Shown: positions 27,553 through 36,698, numbered from the stretch's first letter. The stretch: DNA of 64,000 bases from Monocercomonoides exilis PA203 (GCA_001643675.2 LSRY02000025.1:1116001-1180000); one strand, 5' to 3'. Numbers and translations are program-made. Notes: generated from the letters alone by a model not told the origin.

Positions 27553-30500
27553 CTATTGATGTGGTTTCGTGGTAGAAGAGGAGAAGGATGGAAGTGTTGT
27601 TGCCAAATTGGGCTGAATTGAAGTGGAAATTGAAGAGGAAGAGGCAGATGAAAAAGTCGAAGAAAGCATCATTGGATTGGTACGAGAATTGGTAACAGAG
27701 AAAAGGGTGTTGTCCTGAAATGGAGTTACATGCATGTGCGTTTCGAGTCGAGCAGCAGAAGAGATGAGCTGTTTCTGAAGAACAGATCGTATTTCATCAC
27801 TGGAATGTAACGATGAAAGCCAAGACGTCGATTCATTTTGCACCTATTTGATTCAATGAAAGAACCAAAACAACAACAAAAATTAAAAATCATATCCAAA
27901 AAGAAAAGGACAGTTAATAATAAAAATTATTATGAAATACAAACCTTTGACGCAAAATCTGAGAACGACATAATCAAGTGACCTTCTTCAGTCAACATTG
28001 TAACCCATCTTTCTAATTCATTCAAGCACTTTTGTATCTGCTCAATTTGCTGTTCTTGTTGTGATTTATTCAGCTCTGCCTCTTCTTGTTCCTTCCTCTT
28101 CCGTTCCTCCTCTTCAGCGCGGTGCAAACGGATCATTCTGAGAAGTGTGGAAGGAGATTGTGATGAAGTGCTTAATGCAGTTGATGTATTCTGAGTGGAT
28201 GAAGTAAGTGAAGTGGATAACATTGCTTGCTCCTGTTTATTTTGCTCTTCTTCTTTTTTCTTTGCTTGCTTTTCAATTCTGAATTTCTCTAATCTTTCCG
28301 ATTCCTTCAGCACTTCTTGCATTTGAAGTATTTGTTGAGCTATTTCTGCCTGCCATTCTGATATTTGCTTCTCAATGGACGGAATAAGCTGAGAAGAAAG
28401 AGCAGATCGCATCGTTTCAAACGAGCGATACAAATGGCTCAATACTCTCTGTGATATTCCTGAGGAAGCAGATGATGCTGATGAATAGGATGAAGAAGTC
28501 GAGTTTGGAGAGCCATGAAGTGATGATGAAAGCTCTGCATCTTTTGCTAAAGCAGTTCTATCATCAAATTTTGTGTTTTGATAAGTTGAAGTTCTTTCCG
28601 ATTGAATGCGAGTGTTTGATGGAGTGGCTAAAACATACTGATTTCCGTTTGAAAAGAACTTTTCTTTTTCAAAGAGTTGTGAATCCTCTTTTGTGTCTTT
28701 TCTAAGCTCCAACGAATTTTCTGTCTCTCCTTCTTCTCTTTCTTTCAAAGAAAGCTTATCCTGTTCTTCTTGTTCATTTTCCTTTTCCTCGCCTTCCTCA
28801 ACAAATGCAAGAGGATTCTGGATCTGATTTTTCATTGCAAGCAATTGCCTAACCAATCCCACAATCCGTTTCAGTTGAGCAGTTGTCTGCTGCCTTGCAT
28901 GATGTGCATCTGAAATAAAGACTGACATAACAGATGAGAGCGCATGCGCCAACCTTTGTAGCTTTGGTGGTAAAGGATTTTCCGTTTCGTCATCTTCGTC
29001 TGCTTCACTTGACCCAGCTGAAGATGGCTTAGAAAGACTTATTCCATATCGTTGTTGAGCAGATGAAAGAGCCCATTTGAGCGACAGCATTGAGACTTTT
29101 GCAGCATCAAGTGTTGATCTGGCAACTGTAACACATTTTTTAGATGATGACTGCTCTGAATCAAAAGAGGAATCAGATGAAAATGGAGACCGAAGAAGAG
29201 AAATTGGTAATGTGCTCGACAGAGCCGGAACATCTGGCGAAGCAAAAGATGATTGCGGATGGGAAAATGTTGAGGATAGAGAATTTTTTGTGGGTGATGA
29301 TGAAACCGACGAAAGCATCCCTTTCTTTTTTGTTGTTGATAAAGTGTCAAAATAAATAACAATCCGATTTCCTTCTCGTATTTTCGAATCATCTTCACTG
29401 TCATAATCACTTTCGTCTTCGTCTTCTTCTTCATTGTGATTATTACCAAATATCGTAGAATTTTGTTTCTGATACGATTTATTCTTGTTTTGAATCGTGT
29501 TCATCAATCCTTCGTCTGCTTCTTCATTCACAACCATTCCGCCCCATTCACAGAACAGCGCAAGATCATCAGCAACCTGATCAAATTCATTCTTCTCCTC
29601 TTCGATTTCATTGCGTTCTTCATCTTCATCACTGCTGGTTTCACTCGTTTCCTCATCAGTTGGACCGATCATCTCTGAAAGATGAAGATTCTCGCTTTCG
29701 TCATCTCCTCCTTCGCTTTCTTTGCCAAATTCAGCTTCTCCATTTTGTTTCTTTTCTCTCAACCTTTCCATTCTTCTCATTCTTTTCATTCTTAATGCTT
29801 TTCTCTTTTCCCTCTCTTCTCTTCTCTTTTTCTTTTCTTCTCTTTTTTCTTCTTTAACTTTCTTTTTTTGTATTAGTCGCTTCTGTCTTTTAATGTGATC
29901 CAAGCATCGCTCATGTATTGTTATACTGAGCAGTGAAAGCAGAGGATCATCATTATTTGAAGACAGCTTCTGAATAAGTGATTTGTATCGTTCTTCAACA
30001 ACAGCAACATCAGAAGCACTCAACGGGATGCTGACGGCTTCTGATGGAGAATGTGGTGATGATGAAGACGAGGCTGAATTACCCAAAGAATAACCTTCTG
30101 TTTGATGAATTAATATTTTGTTTTGTGGATTTTGAGGTGAAGATGATGCAGATGAAAAAGTCAATCTTTCTTTTTTGTAATTTCCACCATTTTCTTCTTC
30201 CTTTCGTTCTTTTCTTCTTCGCTTTTCTTCTCTTTCGCTCTGAGCAATAAGTGTCGAAATAGGATTGTTCATTTGTGCCCTCCGAAGAATACGCACAAAA
30301 GATGGAACTTTTCCTTGTCGCAGTTTTTGCTCTGTTATTTTCCATCGCCTTTCACTCTGGGATGTATTATGCTTCCTATTTTCATTTACAGACAATTGTT
30401 GTTGAGCTGAATTATCCAAAGGCGATGGAGTATTTAACATGGGCATATCCGAATTTTCTGCGGATGAAGAGGCTTTTGAGTTGCGAATGTTCCGCTTCGC

Positions 30501-32103
30501 TCGAAAACTTCGAAAAGAACCAAAACCTGTCTTTTCGCTGTCACTTTCATCCTGCGACTCATTTTGCATCATTTCTTCGTCTGTATTCTCATTTTCTGCC
30601 AAATCAGATGATTGACCATCAATTGCTTCTGCCTCAGCATTATTTTCAGCCTTTTCTTCCTCCATCTCAAGCTCCTTCCACAGTTTTTCTTCTCTTCTCT
30701 TTCTCGCTTCTTGCTCGCATTTCAATAGTTCTCCAATATTTTTGTCAAACAATAAATTTTCTGTTTCTCTTTCAATGAATTCTTCAATTGATATTTCATT
30801 TTTAGAGCTCGATTCTTTTCTCTTCAGCTTTCTTTTTCTGCTTTCTTCTGTGTCGTTTTCAGTTCCTTTGTCTTCCTTTCGTTTCTGTCTGAACTTCTCA
30901 TCATTGTTTTCTCTTTCTTTCTCTCTAACAATCTCTCTCTCTTTTATTTTCGAAAGTTGTCCAAATGCTTTTGCCAACAGTGCCTCTTCTCTGAGCATTG
31001 CTGCAGCAGCTGTTTCCGATGTTTCTCTCTCCTTCTCTTCATTGAATGAGACATAAAACAATGCCCATCTTTGGAGAAGTGCATACATCCGCACACACAC
31101 TGCCTTTCCTTCCAATGTTTCTCCTCGTGAGAGCCATAGCAATCGCTCGAGTTTTTTGCTAGCTTCTTCTCGTTCACTTAAACTTCGCAAATCAGCACTG
31201 TGCACTTTGTCAAGAGAGTCAATCTCCTTTTCTTTCTTTTTCAATTCTTCATTAAGCCTTTCAATCTTAAAAGCTAACTGTCCATTTTCCTTTTTTACTC
31301 TAATTATCTCTTCGTTAAGAATTTTGTTGGTTTTTATGCTTTGCTCCAAATCCTCTTTCGTTTGCTTTAAGTCAACAAGAACAGATTCCGTTGATCGCTG
31401 CATTGCGATTTGTTGATGTTGAATGATTTCCTCTTTTGACATGATTTGCTGTTTGGCTTCTTCTCTCAATTGCGCAATCTCTGCAGATTGCTTTTTAATT
31501 GTTACATCTCTGCTCTCAATTGCTTGTTTCATTCGCAGAAAGTCCGCTTTCATGGAGCGAACATTTGAAATGAATTTTGCTTCCATTTCAGTTTTTGATC
31601 TCATAACATTCTGCATATCAGTTCTCAATCTATCTTGTTCGGTTATTACCCGTAAAAGAGCCCCTTTGTGATCTTCAACAATCATTTGATGCCTATGATG
31701 TCGTGCTTTTTGCTCTTGAATTAATAATGAAGCTTCAATAATAAGTTGACTTATTTGCTTAAAACAACGTAAATTTAAAAATCCTAATTAGTATTGAATA
31801 TCACACGCAAACTGCTTTATTTTCCTGATCAATTTCAGCCAATCGAACGCTGGCTGAAAGTTTATCTTCTTGTTGCATCATTATAGTTTCTAATTCTTGA
31901 GGAGTAAGAGCAACATGCGCAAAGCCTTGTTCATTAAATGTCACAGAAGTTCGTGCAGTGGAAGGTGTTTCAGGAACTGAAGAATAAATATAAAATTGAA
32001 ATGTATGAAAAAAATAACATAAAGTGAAAAGTGTTCCGTTTATGACAACAATAAATATTTAATAAAACAACTTAATATATATCATACGGTTTTCCCAAAT
32101 CAT
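27553..32103 (-). CDS. Hypothetical large coiled-coil protein (4 exons)
   Basis: 1251-aa ORF with heptad-rich segments. It extends 5' (ATG 32103, introns ~31979-32087 and ~31759-31810) and 3' (intron ~27844-27944) through GT-AG introns. Confidence 0.7.
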
Positions 32104-32283: not shown

Positions 32284-34688
32284 ATGAGAGAATTAAATGT
32301 TATTTTAATTCTTCTCTCTGCCATTCATGCATTTTCTTTGAAACTACCATTTTTTAATCGAAAAACTGTTCAGGAATTACCAGTTTTTTCTTGCGCAGAA
32401 GAAGATACAGCGAACATTCAATCTTTTTTCCTTCAACATGATTGCTCAAATTTAAGTACTGAGCAACAGCAGAAAGCTGCACTTATGTTATACAATACAT
32501 ATTCACATGAATTAGGTGATTGATTTTCATATTTATTTCATTTTATCCAAACTAATTATTTATTTTTTTATTTTTAAGGAATGAGTGAAATTCGATGCCG
32601 TAAAAAGGAAACGACTTCTCAATGCATCAGAAAGCATGGAACTCAACAAAGCAAACGTGCTATTTCTTCTATCATATTTTCTTTGGATTCTGTATGCTGG
32701 ACTCTTAAGCAAGAGGCATGGATTGCAAAGCTTAATAAAACAAATGAGAGGATATTCTCATTAAATAATCTACCACCTGAAATGCTTCAAAACGTAAATG
32801 AACTGAAAAGAGAATTTAATGGTATTGCAGAAACATTACGAGCCATTTCTTCCGAAGTTATTGTGGAGCAACAAGCTCATCTCTCTGCCTTAAAAGGTTT
32901 CAGAGAACTTCAAGAAAGTTCATTTAAAGAAACGATAACTACAGTTGATGAATTCTTACGTTGCCATCGTTTGTAATTGGATTATGTCATTTTGTTTATG
33001 CTATTTTTCGGATTTTTTAACTTTTAGATCAACTTGCTCTTTCTTTATCCAATATGACAAATCAACTTCGAAACAGCTTATCTGAATCTGCAAAAAACAT
33101 CAACATCGCGAGAAACATGGTATATACTCCGAAAATTCCTTTTTATTTCTATTTTTGCCATTGACAAAATATTTGCTTTTATTTATTAAAACATTATTTT
33201 TTATTCGGAAAATTTTGGAATAGTCTGAAAGTGCAAACCAGATGCTTGCTGGCGGAGCTCAATTGATGCAATTGATTGCGAGCACCTGGAATGAAACAAA
33301 TAGCCATTTTCTGTCTCTTTCAGAAGAATTAGACAAAGCTGAAGCGGCTGTGAAGGTGGCGCAGGACGCAAGCAAAGCGACAGGCGAGGCAACTGCAAAT
33401 GTGAAGAAGTGGTGGGGCGAGCTGAAGAGAATGATGACAGAGTATGCTGCAGAAGATAAGAAATGGAACCAATATCTGAATCAGGTTTGCTTTTTATTCA
33501 TTTTTAACATTCATCTTACACTGTTTGTATTGTTTTGTTGATCTTTTTCTTTTTTTTTATCGAAAACTTTCCCTTTGCTTGATAATGCACTTCAGCAATT
33601 GTTCAACATTTCTTCTACACTCTCTTCTCTTTCGCAGCTGCAGCAAAGCATAATAGCTTCTCAGATAACACTGGCAAATGAGCAGAAAGATTTCAAGAAG
33701 ACAGCCGAGATAGAGAAAGAAGCAGCATTTCGCAGAAAAGACATGTTGAAGGATTCATTGAATGAAATGCAGCAAGCTTCCACTGTATGAAAGTTGCTGT
33801 TTCTGTTGATAGCATTCTATTTACTGTTTATTCTCTATGCTTGCTGCATATGCATTTCTTCTGTTTTTTGTTTGGTTCTTTTTTAAACAGGAGGTCCAAT
33901 CAACAATTGATGACATTTCCAACTTTACCAACACAATGATGAATGAACTGAAAGTAAAAATGCGTCTCCTTATGAATTATACAGTCACAATCAAATGTTT
34001 GTCTCTGCTTTTGAAAATTTATTGATAAGCATCAAATTTGTTTTCTTTTTTGAATAAATGTTTCTTTAATTCTTTCTTCTTCAACGTTACTTCATTAAAC
34101 TTGCCTATGTTTCTCTTGTTTTGTGCGATGCTTTCTTCTTCAAAGCAATTACAATCAAAATTGAAACGGTGGTGTTTTATATTTGCATTTTCATCCTCTG
34201 CTTGATTTCAACATCAACGCCACATACCCATTCAGCACGATTCATTGTTTTGCTGCTCTTCTTCTCTCTCTTTTTCTTTGAAGTGACGATCAGTACAAAA
34301 ATCCGTTTTTCTGGAAAGCCAATTTTTCGTTCACCTTCTTCTGCAACTGAACCAACAGCAGCTGGAGATAATGATCCCAACAACTTCAATAACAACACAT
34401 TTATATCTGTGTCTCGTTATCTTTTCATGGGTGTTATTCTTGCAGTTCTTATACGTGCCACACTTGTTTATTCCAGACATCGGTCAAGACAAACGCGACA
34501 CCTTCTGTATATGCAGAAGCTCATGAACTCACAGAAACAATTTGTGTGCAGTTGATTCTTCTTTTATATTTATTTATTTGTCTTTCGTTATTTCCTAAAA
34601 ATTTTCTTTTGTTTAACAGATCGAGAATAATGATTTGGAGATAAGGCAAAAAATAAGAAAGAAGGAAAAGCAGCTAAAATTTGCATGA
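32284..34688 (+). CDS. GEX1: GEX1/KAR5/Brambleberry-like nuclear envelope fusion protein (~575 aa, about 8 exons)
   Basis: Signal peptide, then Cys-rich domain CSNLSTEQQQKAALMLYNTYSHELGMSEIRC..TSQCIRK..LDSVCWTLKQEAW, then a long coiled coil. Three C-terminal TMs follow, with the family-like VVFYICIFILCLISTSTPHTHSARF..FFE and SRYLF..ATLVY. Confidence 0.75.
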
Positions 34689-34899: not shown

Positions 34900-36698
34900 A
34901 CTTTAAACTGAAATGATTCAAGGCTGCTTAATTTAGTCTTTTTCTTCCTTTCTTTCAGGATAAAGCAATAAATATCCTTCACCATTCATAGTGTGTGCAG
35001 CCAAAACATGTCAACAATTATATTTGTTGGAATAAAAAACATAAAAAGAAAGCATGACCATTTTCAGAGTTATCGAGTTGAACATAAATTAGTAGGCAAA
35101 AACAATATCAATAAAAACACACTATCAATCGTGCCTTTCAGTTCTTCTTCAGAAACAATCAAATTTTTTGCCTCTTCATACGTTACATCTTCAAAACTAT
35201 CAGGCCACATGTTTGTAGATTTGATGAAGTTCATCAAAGATTCTCTGTCATATACAGTTCCCCCTGGAGTCTTGACTGGATCCGACATTATCTAACAATT
35301 ATTGATTTTTTTGGTGTGTGTCATTATAAAGTACATAATACATATTTATAAGAGCAAAAATCCCAAATAATTTTCGATCAAACAATTGACCAAAAAAAAA
35401 AAAAAGGAATCAGACTTCTCTTGAAAGTGCGCAACGAAATCCCATGTTATCTTCTTCTTTCTTATTCATTTTTGCGAACTCTGGTGTTGGTTCGCGCTGT
35501 GGCTCGATATGTTCTTCTTCTTCTTCTTCTTTTGGTCTTTCTTTTATTTCCTGCTGAATCTCAGCTAATTGAAAATTATACGTAGATTGGCCAAATTGTG
35601 GGGCGCTAGGACCGATACTTTCTTCGATGCTTAATTTCAATTGTTCTTGTTCAGGAACAACATGAGCATATTGCCATTGTTGCCCATAAGAAGGCACAGC
35701 TGCAACTGGAAACGAAGGCAGCAATAAAGGATTAGAGGCAGTAACAGCTGCAGAAGATGGTCTTGAAATGTGACCTTGATTAAATGATGGAGAAGAGAAT
35801 GATACTGATGAAATGCTCGGCGTTGATTGATAGTTCAATCGCTTTCCGCAATTTGTAATTGAGACAAGCTCCATAACATGAGGCATTGTTAATGACCCTC
35901 TTTCAATGATGGTTGCACATACTTCTAATTCTATTTTTTGGTGAATCATTTATTAAAAATTAAATTAGCGAGCAAAAATAGAGCATTGCAAACGAGTATT
36001 TGGATCCCTCATCTTGCAAAACGATACAAAATTCTTGTTTGATAGCAAAACGAGAAGAACAACATCTTCAACTTTACTTGAGAAAAAAGGCGAAATAATA
36101 AACTCGATCGCAAGATATAAATTTTCTCGAAACTGAATCTCACGAAATTGTCGGAAAAATCCAACAAGAAGAATTTGAGTATTTTTCCAAATATTTTCAA
36201 AAAATCTGTTTGGTGCTTTTTGAGCATTGCTACCAAACAAATTCAAAAATCGAAAAACTGATATCGAAAAATTTGGGCGAGCTGAACTGTTAAATGGAAT
36301 TGCATCCACTTCCACTGAACTTTCTCCTGTGATCGTTAAGTTATATATATTTAAAAAATGATTGCGAAAGCTTTCAAATAAATGGAACAAAAATTACCAA
36401 GATTTCTTATAATTCCATCAAAATACAATGATTGGCCTATATCCCTTTTGTACCGGTACATTCCGAGAAGTTGAGGATTCATATTCAAAATAATGAAAAA
36501 ATTATCAATTCCTTGCTCAGGTGGATTTGGAAGAATTGTAACTTTATCATAAGAATCCATAACAACTTTTCCTTCCCATCTCACAACCTGATTCTCATAC
36601 TGAGAATGCCATAAATTAAGGAGTCTTTCATTAGAATGAGCAGAACAACTTGATATGTAATTATCCCAACTGTACAGGGTGTGGCACAGTTGGCTCAT
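34900..36698 (-). CDS. Protein with two tandem OB-fold-like (tRNA_anti/Wolframin-C-like) domains and a C-terminal U-box; 3' end uncertain
   Basis: OB-like YENQVVRWEGKV..IGQSLYFDGII and a second similar repeat. U-box FRCALSRE(I)MSDPVKTPGGTVYDRESLMNFI is split by an intron. Confidence 0.7.

Follow-up and report, generated by a model that had tools for sequence, protein, structure and literature searches.

MONOS_1395 of Monocercomonoides exilis encodes a probable, divergent GEX1/KAR5/Brambleberry protein with five cysteines in its Cys-rich domain

Background

Does the intron-fragmented gene MONOS_1395 of Monocercomonoides exilis encode a member of the GEX1/KAR5/Brambleberry family of nuclear fusion proteins, and what would such a protein do in this organism? 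M. exilis is an amitochondriate (mitochondrion-less) oxymonad. GEX1/KAR5 and HAP2 are two widely used genomic markers of a hidden sexual cycle in protists.

In the literature, members of the family are defined by a signal peptide, a Cys-rich domain (CRD) at the N-terminus in which six cysteines are conserved, between one and three coiled coils and, at the C-terminus, two or three transmembrane (TM) helices. GEX1 proteins have three TM helices, and the CRD is the sole part of the GEX1/KAR5/Brambleberry family that is conserved in sequence. Its six cysteines, said to be conserved 'in every ortholog', are essential in yeast, where those of Kar5p are C56, C68, C91, C105, C116 and C141.

According to PMC8516963, sex has yet to be observed in Metamonada. 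Using taxon-enriched HMMs, Salas-Leiva et al. 2021 (PMC8516963, Supplementary Data) listed MONOS_1395 as Gex1, the first of four M. exilis candidates (the others being MONOS_16183, MONOS_16630 and MONOS_16849), and MONOS_2438 as Hap2; the conclusion of cryptic sex was already drawn in that work for metamonads, MONOS_1395 included. The Gex1 identity of MONOS_1395 is thus already known, and the novelty of the present analysis is modest: it concerns the five-cysteine CRD, the gene model available in EukProt and the name carried by the protein at NCBI.

Results and discussion

Gene structure and public models of MONOS_1395

Within the window, by which we mean the whole stretch of 64,000 nucleotides analysed, G000:C20:1116001-1180000, MONOS_1395 occupies positions 32284-34688 (+) and consists of eight exons in phase, separated by seven GT..AG introns. 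Its main features are as follows.

Exon 1, 32284..32515 (+): residues 1-77 and the first base of Gly78; signal peptide, Cys37, Cys54 and Thr72
Predicted signal peptide, 32284-32337 (+): residues 1-18; A-F-S precedes the likely cleavage site
Motif AALMLYNT with Thr72, codon ACA at 32497-32499 (+): expected position of the family's third cysteine
Intron 1, 32516..32578 (+): 63 nt, GTGATT..TTTAAG, GC 0.14
Exon 2, 32579..32968 (+): residues 78-208; Cys84, Cys93, Cys117 and Cys206; the long helical region begins here
Exon 3, 33028..33119 (+): residues 208-238; predicted lumenal helical region
Exon 4, 33224..33484 (+): residues 239-325; predicted lumenal helical region, heptad-periodic
Exon 5, 33596..33784 (+): residues 326-388; predicted lumenal helical region, heptad-periodic
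Exon 6, 33891..33996 (+): residues 389-424; end of the coiled-coil-like region
Exon 7, 34146..34543 (+): residues 424-556; predicted TM1, TM2 and TM3 and the start of the basic tail
Predicted TM1, 34160-34216 (+): residues 429-447, from hydropathy and an AF2 helix
Predicted TM2, 34229-34297 (+): residues 452-474, from hydropathy and an AF2 helix
Predicted TM3, 34397-34468 (+): residues about 508-531, from hydropathy, with an AF2 helix from 508 on
Exon 8, 34620..34688 (+): residues 557-578 and the TGA stop; Lys/Arg-rich C-terminal tail

All exon pieces, as well as the three codons interrupted by introns, agree exactly with the 578-aa public protein (KAH7822857.1 / XP_067726715.1; P0003), a match that holds only if exon 2 ends at 32968 and not at 32959. 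The annotated donor of intron 2 is the GT at 32969 (GTTTGT), a donor type shared with introns 4 and 6; its use in place of the GT at 32960 adds Arg-Cys-His and lengthens the protein from 575 to 578 aa. The original prediction, in which small ORFs were joined across seven GT-AG introns into a protein of about 575 aa, was therefore right in its exons and introns and differs in the donor of intron 2 and in the final length. The introns measure 59-149 nt, with a GC content of 0.14-0.31 as compared with 0.30-0.47 for the exons (computed on the model that differs by nine bases at intron 2). These lengths and base compositions agree with the published means for introns of the M. exilis genome, which are 119 nt and 27.6% GC (PMC8767320).

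Two versions of MONOS_1395 are publicly available, the 578-aa NCBI model and a 511-aa EukProt model (P0001). The latter starts at Met68 and is devoid of the signal peptide and of the first two CRD cysteines, so that comparative surveys based on EukProt see a shortened Cys-rich domain for this gene. At NCBI the 578-aa protein is named only as an 'uncharacterized' or 'hypothetical' protein. As to whether the existing annotation lists GEX1, which had been put forward as a check on the identification, the NCBI record does not carry the name; the survey of Salas-Leiva et al. 2021 does.

Predicted architecture and topology of the protein

Residues 3-25 are hydrophobic and follow a charged start, small residues occupy positions -3/-1 (A-F-S) near residue 18, and the AF2 model places a helix at residues 2-19. 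Judged from hydropathy and this helix, the protein very probably begins with a signal peptide of the kind found throughout the GEX1/KAR5/Brambleberry family. Five cysteines (37, 54, 84, 93 and 117) fall in the CRD and three lie beyond it (206, 437 and 442), Cys206 being the sole one between Cys117 and the membrane region.

About 280 residues of the protein are heptad-periodic. Over residues 130-424 we counted 83 periodic windows, as against 13 +/- 11 in shuffled sequences, with none of 300 shuffles reaching 83; the counts come from a crude home-made score and not from COILS or Marcoil. AF2 models this region, with low confidence, as long helices at 147-287 and 293-416. Taken together, both observations point to a coiled coil between the CRD and the membrane segments. 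Nearer the C-terminus, three hydrophobic segments with Kyte-Doolittle values of 1.9-2.3 are helical in the AF2 model, and residues 535-578 contain 12 K+R as opposed to 4 D+E; the protein is accordingly predicted to end in three TM helices followed by a basic tail, in keeping with the C-terminal membrane region of the family. The complete arrangement of signal peptide, Cys-rich domain, coiled coil and three TM helices that had been read from the DNA is thus borne out by hydropathy, heptad score and AF2.

A signal peptide combined with a positive-inside tail would place the Cys-rich domain and the coiled coils in the lumen (ER/perinuclear) and leave the C-terminus facing the cytoplasm or nucleoplasm. 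The same lumenal topology has been demonstrated for yeast Kar5p and proposed for GEX1.

Evidence for membership of the GEX1/KAR5/Brambleberry family

When the whole protein was used to query the ESM Atlas by learned features, a search covering 7.7 million clusters in which about 170 shared features are typical of true family members, the top cluster was that of the Tht1-like nuclear fusion protein (PF04163), with a score of 0.94 and 217 of 256 features in common. Plant GAMETE EXPRESSED 1 clusters came next, and all 30 of the nearest Atlas clusters belonged to these two sets. The CRD alone (residues 24-135) again had PF04163 as its best match by features, weakly so at 0.81. By structure, the four clusters nearest to the same residues comprised Brambleberry twice, a rotifer hypothetical protein and a GEX1-like protein, with modest TM-scores by query of 0.53-0.69 over residues 34-135 between models that are predicted on both sides.

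Our own AF2 model of residues 24-215, which is independent of the ESMFold model of the Atlas, reached a pLDDT of 70-84 over the CRD core. Its nearest Atlas clusters were a plant hypothetical protein (TM-score 0.53/0.47), two Brambleberry clusters and a GEX1-like one, and unrelated bacterial entries ranked lower. The structural check proposed at the outset for the Cys-rich domain therefore gave the same outcome with two predicted models, both of them nearest to Brambleberry/GEX1-like clusters. Models of the whole protein are of low confidence (pLDDT about 0.5). Searches of the PDB by fold and by sequence returned only generic helical bundles and no rival fold. As far as predicted models and learned features can tell, the CRD appears to have the fold and sequence features common to proven members of the family.

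Sequence profiles behaved differently. A match to a profile such as Tht1 had also been proposed as a check, and it failed: the Pfam Tht1 model (PF04163) gave no match at E<=10 to single exons or to the full MONOS_1395 protein, and a PF04163 scan of the genome gave none at the locus. An exon-by-exon profile score is halved here because intron 1 cuts the Cys-rich domain in two. The silence of PF04163 carries little weight, since this model is weak outside fungi; it is carried by 21-48% of the members of the Tht1/GEX1 Atlas clusters and by none in the Brambleberry clusters.

Searches for relatives by sequence were likewise negative. With exon 2 as the query, phmmer found no relative among 1.8 billion representative proteins, returning only the older model of MONOS_1395 and the repeat protein P0002; 5.8 billion proteins searched by word seeding, with the full-length sequence and with its CRD region as queries, yielded only the MONOS_1395 protein itself; and no relative was found in gut-metagenome DNA contigs. 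Within the M. exilis genome, exons 2 and 7, the CRD and the complete protein, each used as a query, gave nothing but noise, and the paralogue candidates that came up (L003, L007/L019 and L020) were rejected as unrelated or of low complexity. P0002 (2848 aa, E=5e-24 to exon 2) was rejected as an artefact, in which one 25-residue match was summed over 35 repeat copies. This last case also illustrates how repeats inflate phmmer scores.

We conclude that MONOS_1395 is, with a probability of about 0.8, a divergent member of the GEX1/KAR5/Brambleberry family, an assignment based on predicted structure, learned features and architecture and not on sequence profiles. The family originally proposed for this gene is in this way supported by the architecture, the Atlas features, the two predicted CRD structures and the listing of Salas-Leiva et al. 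2021.

Comparison with characterized members of the family

GEX1 of Arabidopsis, Chlamydomonas and Plasmodium resembles MONOS_1395 in having a signal peptide, an N-terminal CRD, at least two coiled-coil stretches and three C-terminal TM helices. Its size is similar (about 590-600 aa in the cluster representatives, 578 aa in MONOS_1395), and plant GEX1 clusters are among the nearest both by features and by structure. GEX1 has six CRD cysteines whereas MONOS_1395 has five, and no similarity between the two is detectable by HMMER or BLAST-type searches.

Kar5p/Tht1 (PF04163), the source of the top feature neighbour, shares with MONOS_1395 the order of domains and the lumenal topology (predicted in MONOS_1395), and the spacing of the Kar5p cysteines (C56, C68, [C91], C105, C116, C141) runs parallel to that of the M. 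exilis protein. It differs in having two TM helices instead of three and in possessing C91, an equivalent of which is absent from MONOS_1395; in addition, the Pfam Tht1 model misses the M. exilis protein.

Zebrafish and other vertebrates have Brambleberry, a protein of nuclear-envelope fusion whose domains come in the same order and whose CRD fold is the closest to that of MONOS_1395 in both predicted-structure searches. Brambleberry has two TM helices, unlike MONOS_1395, and acts in embryonic pronuclear and karyomere fusion. No Brambleberry protein was returned by any of the sequence searches with MONOS_1395 (phmmer with exon 2, word-seeded and metagenome searches).

The missing third cysteine

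The CRD of MONOS_1395 lies in the right place and contains five cysteines over 80 residues, as compared with six over 85 in yeast Kar5p. The gaps between them (17, 30, 9 and 24) are best fitted to Kar5p when the third yeast cysteine, C91, is left out: on dropping each yeast cysteine in turn, the summed gap difference was 15 for the third and 25-37 for the other five. Proportional placement of the missing cysteine gives position 72.6; the Thr of ..LYNT.. occupies residue 72. The spacing thus supports Thr72 as the residue that stands in for the equivalent of yeast C91, and it sustains the earlier suggestion, made on the motif AALMLYNT, that a conserved cysteine has been replaced there. The Thr72 codon is three substitutions away from TGY. 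Thr72 is also present in the older model derived from a 454 assembly (P0001), which means that it is not an error of the nanopore assembly.

In yeast, the C91A variant is expressed normally and loses both spindle-pole-body enrichment and nuclear fusion. Since MONOS_1395 breaks the six-cysteine rule, we file it as a divergent and not as a typical member of the family. With Thr in place of the third cysteine, one lumenal Cys would be left without an intradomain partner, or else the disulfide pattern would be altered.

A tentative reading, to which we give rather low odds, is that MONOS_1395 functions with its five cysteines, as a natural GEX1/KAR5 protein that is an exception to the six-cysteine rule. 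The equivalent of C91 would then have been given up in M. exilis, which has no spindle pole body of the yeast type, and the unpaired lumenal Cys could link molecules on opposite membranes through an intermolecular disulfide. In a variant of this reading, this copy would have taken on nuclear-envelope fusion outside sex, the canonical domain being kept by other GEX1 copies in the genome. How a five-cysteine CRD does without a residue essential in yeast is, for this family, a question of structure and function that is small and testable.

A sexual toolkit in M. exilis and the proposed role of MONOS_1395

A search of the M. exilis genome for HAP2 and meiosis genes, suggested together with the identification of MONOS_1395, found HAP2, a SPO11-like domain and HOP2, as follows.

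G000:C10:158794-161208 (+): multi-exon HAP2/GCS1 gene, presumably MONOS_2438; PF10699 positions 1-514 in three pieces, best E=4.8e-48
G000:C14:885788-885895 (+): SPO11/TopoVI-A type domain; PF04406, E=2e-8, above the Pfam cut-off
G000:C7:752422-752574 (+): HOP2/TBPIP domain; PF07106, E=5e-18, above the Pfam cut-off

The co-occurrence of a putative GEX1/KAR5 protein and HAP2 in an amitochondriate oxymonad supports, at the level of gene content, cryptic sex in this organism. The view that the locus points to a sexual toolkit in a metamonad was correct in this respect and is not new, having been published by Salas-Leiva et al. 2021.

By analogy with the family, the MONOS_1395 protein would be inserted into the ER and spread to the nuclear envelope, where its lumenal coiled coils and Cys domain might form oligomers, perhaps in trans across the outer and inner membranes. 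In this manner it would couple the two membranes, and karyogamy, the fusion of nuclear membranes that follows HAP2-driven cell fusion, may depend on it for its completion. This function is modelled on the genetics of the family in yeast, Chlamydomonas, Plasmodium, Arabidopsis and zebrafish.

Alternative readings

The family may be the right one and the task a different one. MONOS_1395 could serve in non-sexual nuclear-envelope dynamics, resealing or fusing membranes around division in the manner of Brambleberry in zebrafish karyomere fusion, in which case the presence of the gene would say little about sex in M. exilis. Brambleberry clusters are indeed among the nearest structural neighbours, Brambleberry itself acts in karyomere fusion during embryonic mitoses, the absence of observed sex in Metamonada (PMC8516963) would be accounted for, and the protein lacks the equivalent of the yeast cysteine required for spindle-pole-body targeting and fusion. 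We nevertheless consider such a role unlikely, given that karyogamy is the task of the family, and sexual stages the time of its induction, in every protist, plant and fungus studied in the literature, and that the retention of HAP2, SPO11-like and HOP2 sequences in the genome fits a sexual cycle.

The loss of a key cysteine might instead mark MONOS_1395 as a paralogue that has drifted or is decaying, karyogamy being carried out by the product of one of the other Gex1 candidates (MONOS_16183, MONOS_16630 or MONOS_16849). That four candidates were reported in M. exilis (PMC8516963), that only five of the six cysteines are present and that the databases searched contain no relative would all be expected on these grounds. 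This explanation also seems improbable to us, because the reading frame is intact over eight exons with seven canonical splice sites, the order of domains is complete, the CRD, whose predicted fold is of moderate confidence, continues to retrieve the family, and MONOS_1395 stands first among the candidates tabulated by Salas-Leiva et al.

The least likely of the three, and one to which we give very little credence, is that MONOS_1395 is a lineage-specific coiled-coil membrane protein of the ER or nuclear envelope that resembles GEX1/KAR5 by convergence without homology: no family member was matched significantly by sequence or Pfam profile, shuffled proteins reach Atlas feature scores of at least 0.9 in 4-10% of cases and TM-scores of about 0.5 on short helical domains can occur by chance, but three partly independent routes picked the same rare family from the Atlas clusters with no other family recurring, the number of shared features exceeds that typical of true members, the Cys spacing tracks that of yeast Kar5p, and an independent HMM survey (Salas-Leiva et al.) made the same assignment.

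Neighbouring genes and other sequences

Upstream of MONOS_1395, at 27930-31685 (-) in the window, lies an uninterrupted ORF of 1251 aa that is rich in Glu, Lys and Ser and has no Pfam family; the two genes diverge head-to-head, with about 600 bp between them. Downstream, an exon on the opposite strand at 35070-35288 (-) encodes a U-box domain (PF04564, E=2.5e-5) and probably belongs to one gene with the ORF at 35410-35949 (-).

Elsewhere in the genome, the only PF04163 match, a weak one at C2:529102-529212 (E=0.17) that at first sight looked like a Kar5 motif, was rejected as a chance hit because it falls in low-complexity sequence and no coherent gene surrounds it. This spurious Tht1 match adjoins simple-sequence DNA at C2 (about 524900-527300; L021:3876-6341), where overlapping, low-complexity ORFs rich in Ser, Phe and Leu extend over kilobases with Lys/Arg-rich ORFs on the other strand. 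Finally, a 914-aa ORF at G000:C7:175274-178018 (L007:18-2762, +) combines a strong separase domain (Peptidase_C50, E=1.9e-51) with long stretches of poly-Ser, and the opposite strand of this separase gene is the source of the spurious weak paralogue match at L007.
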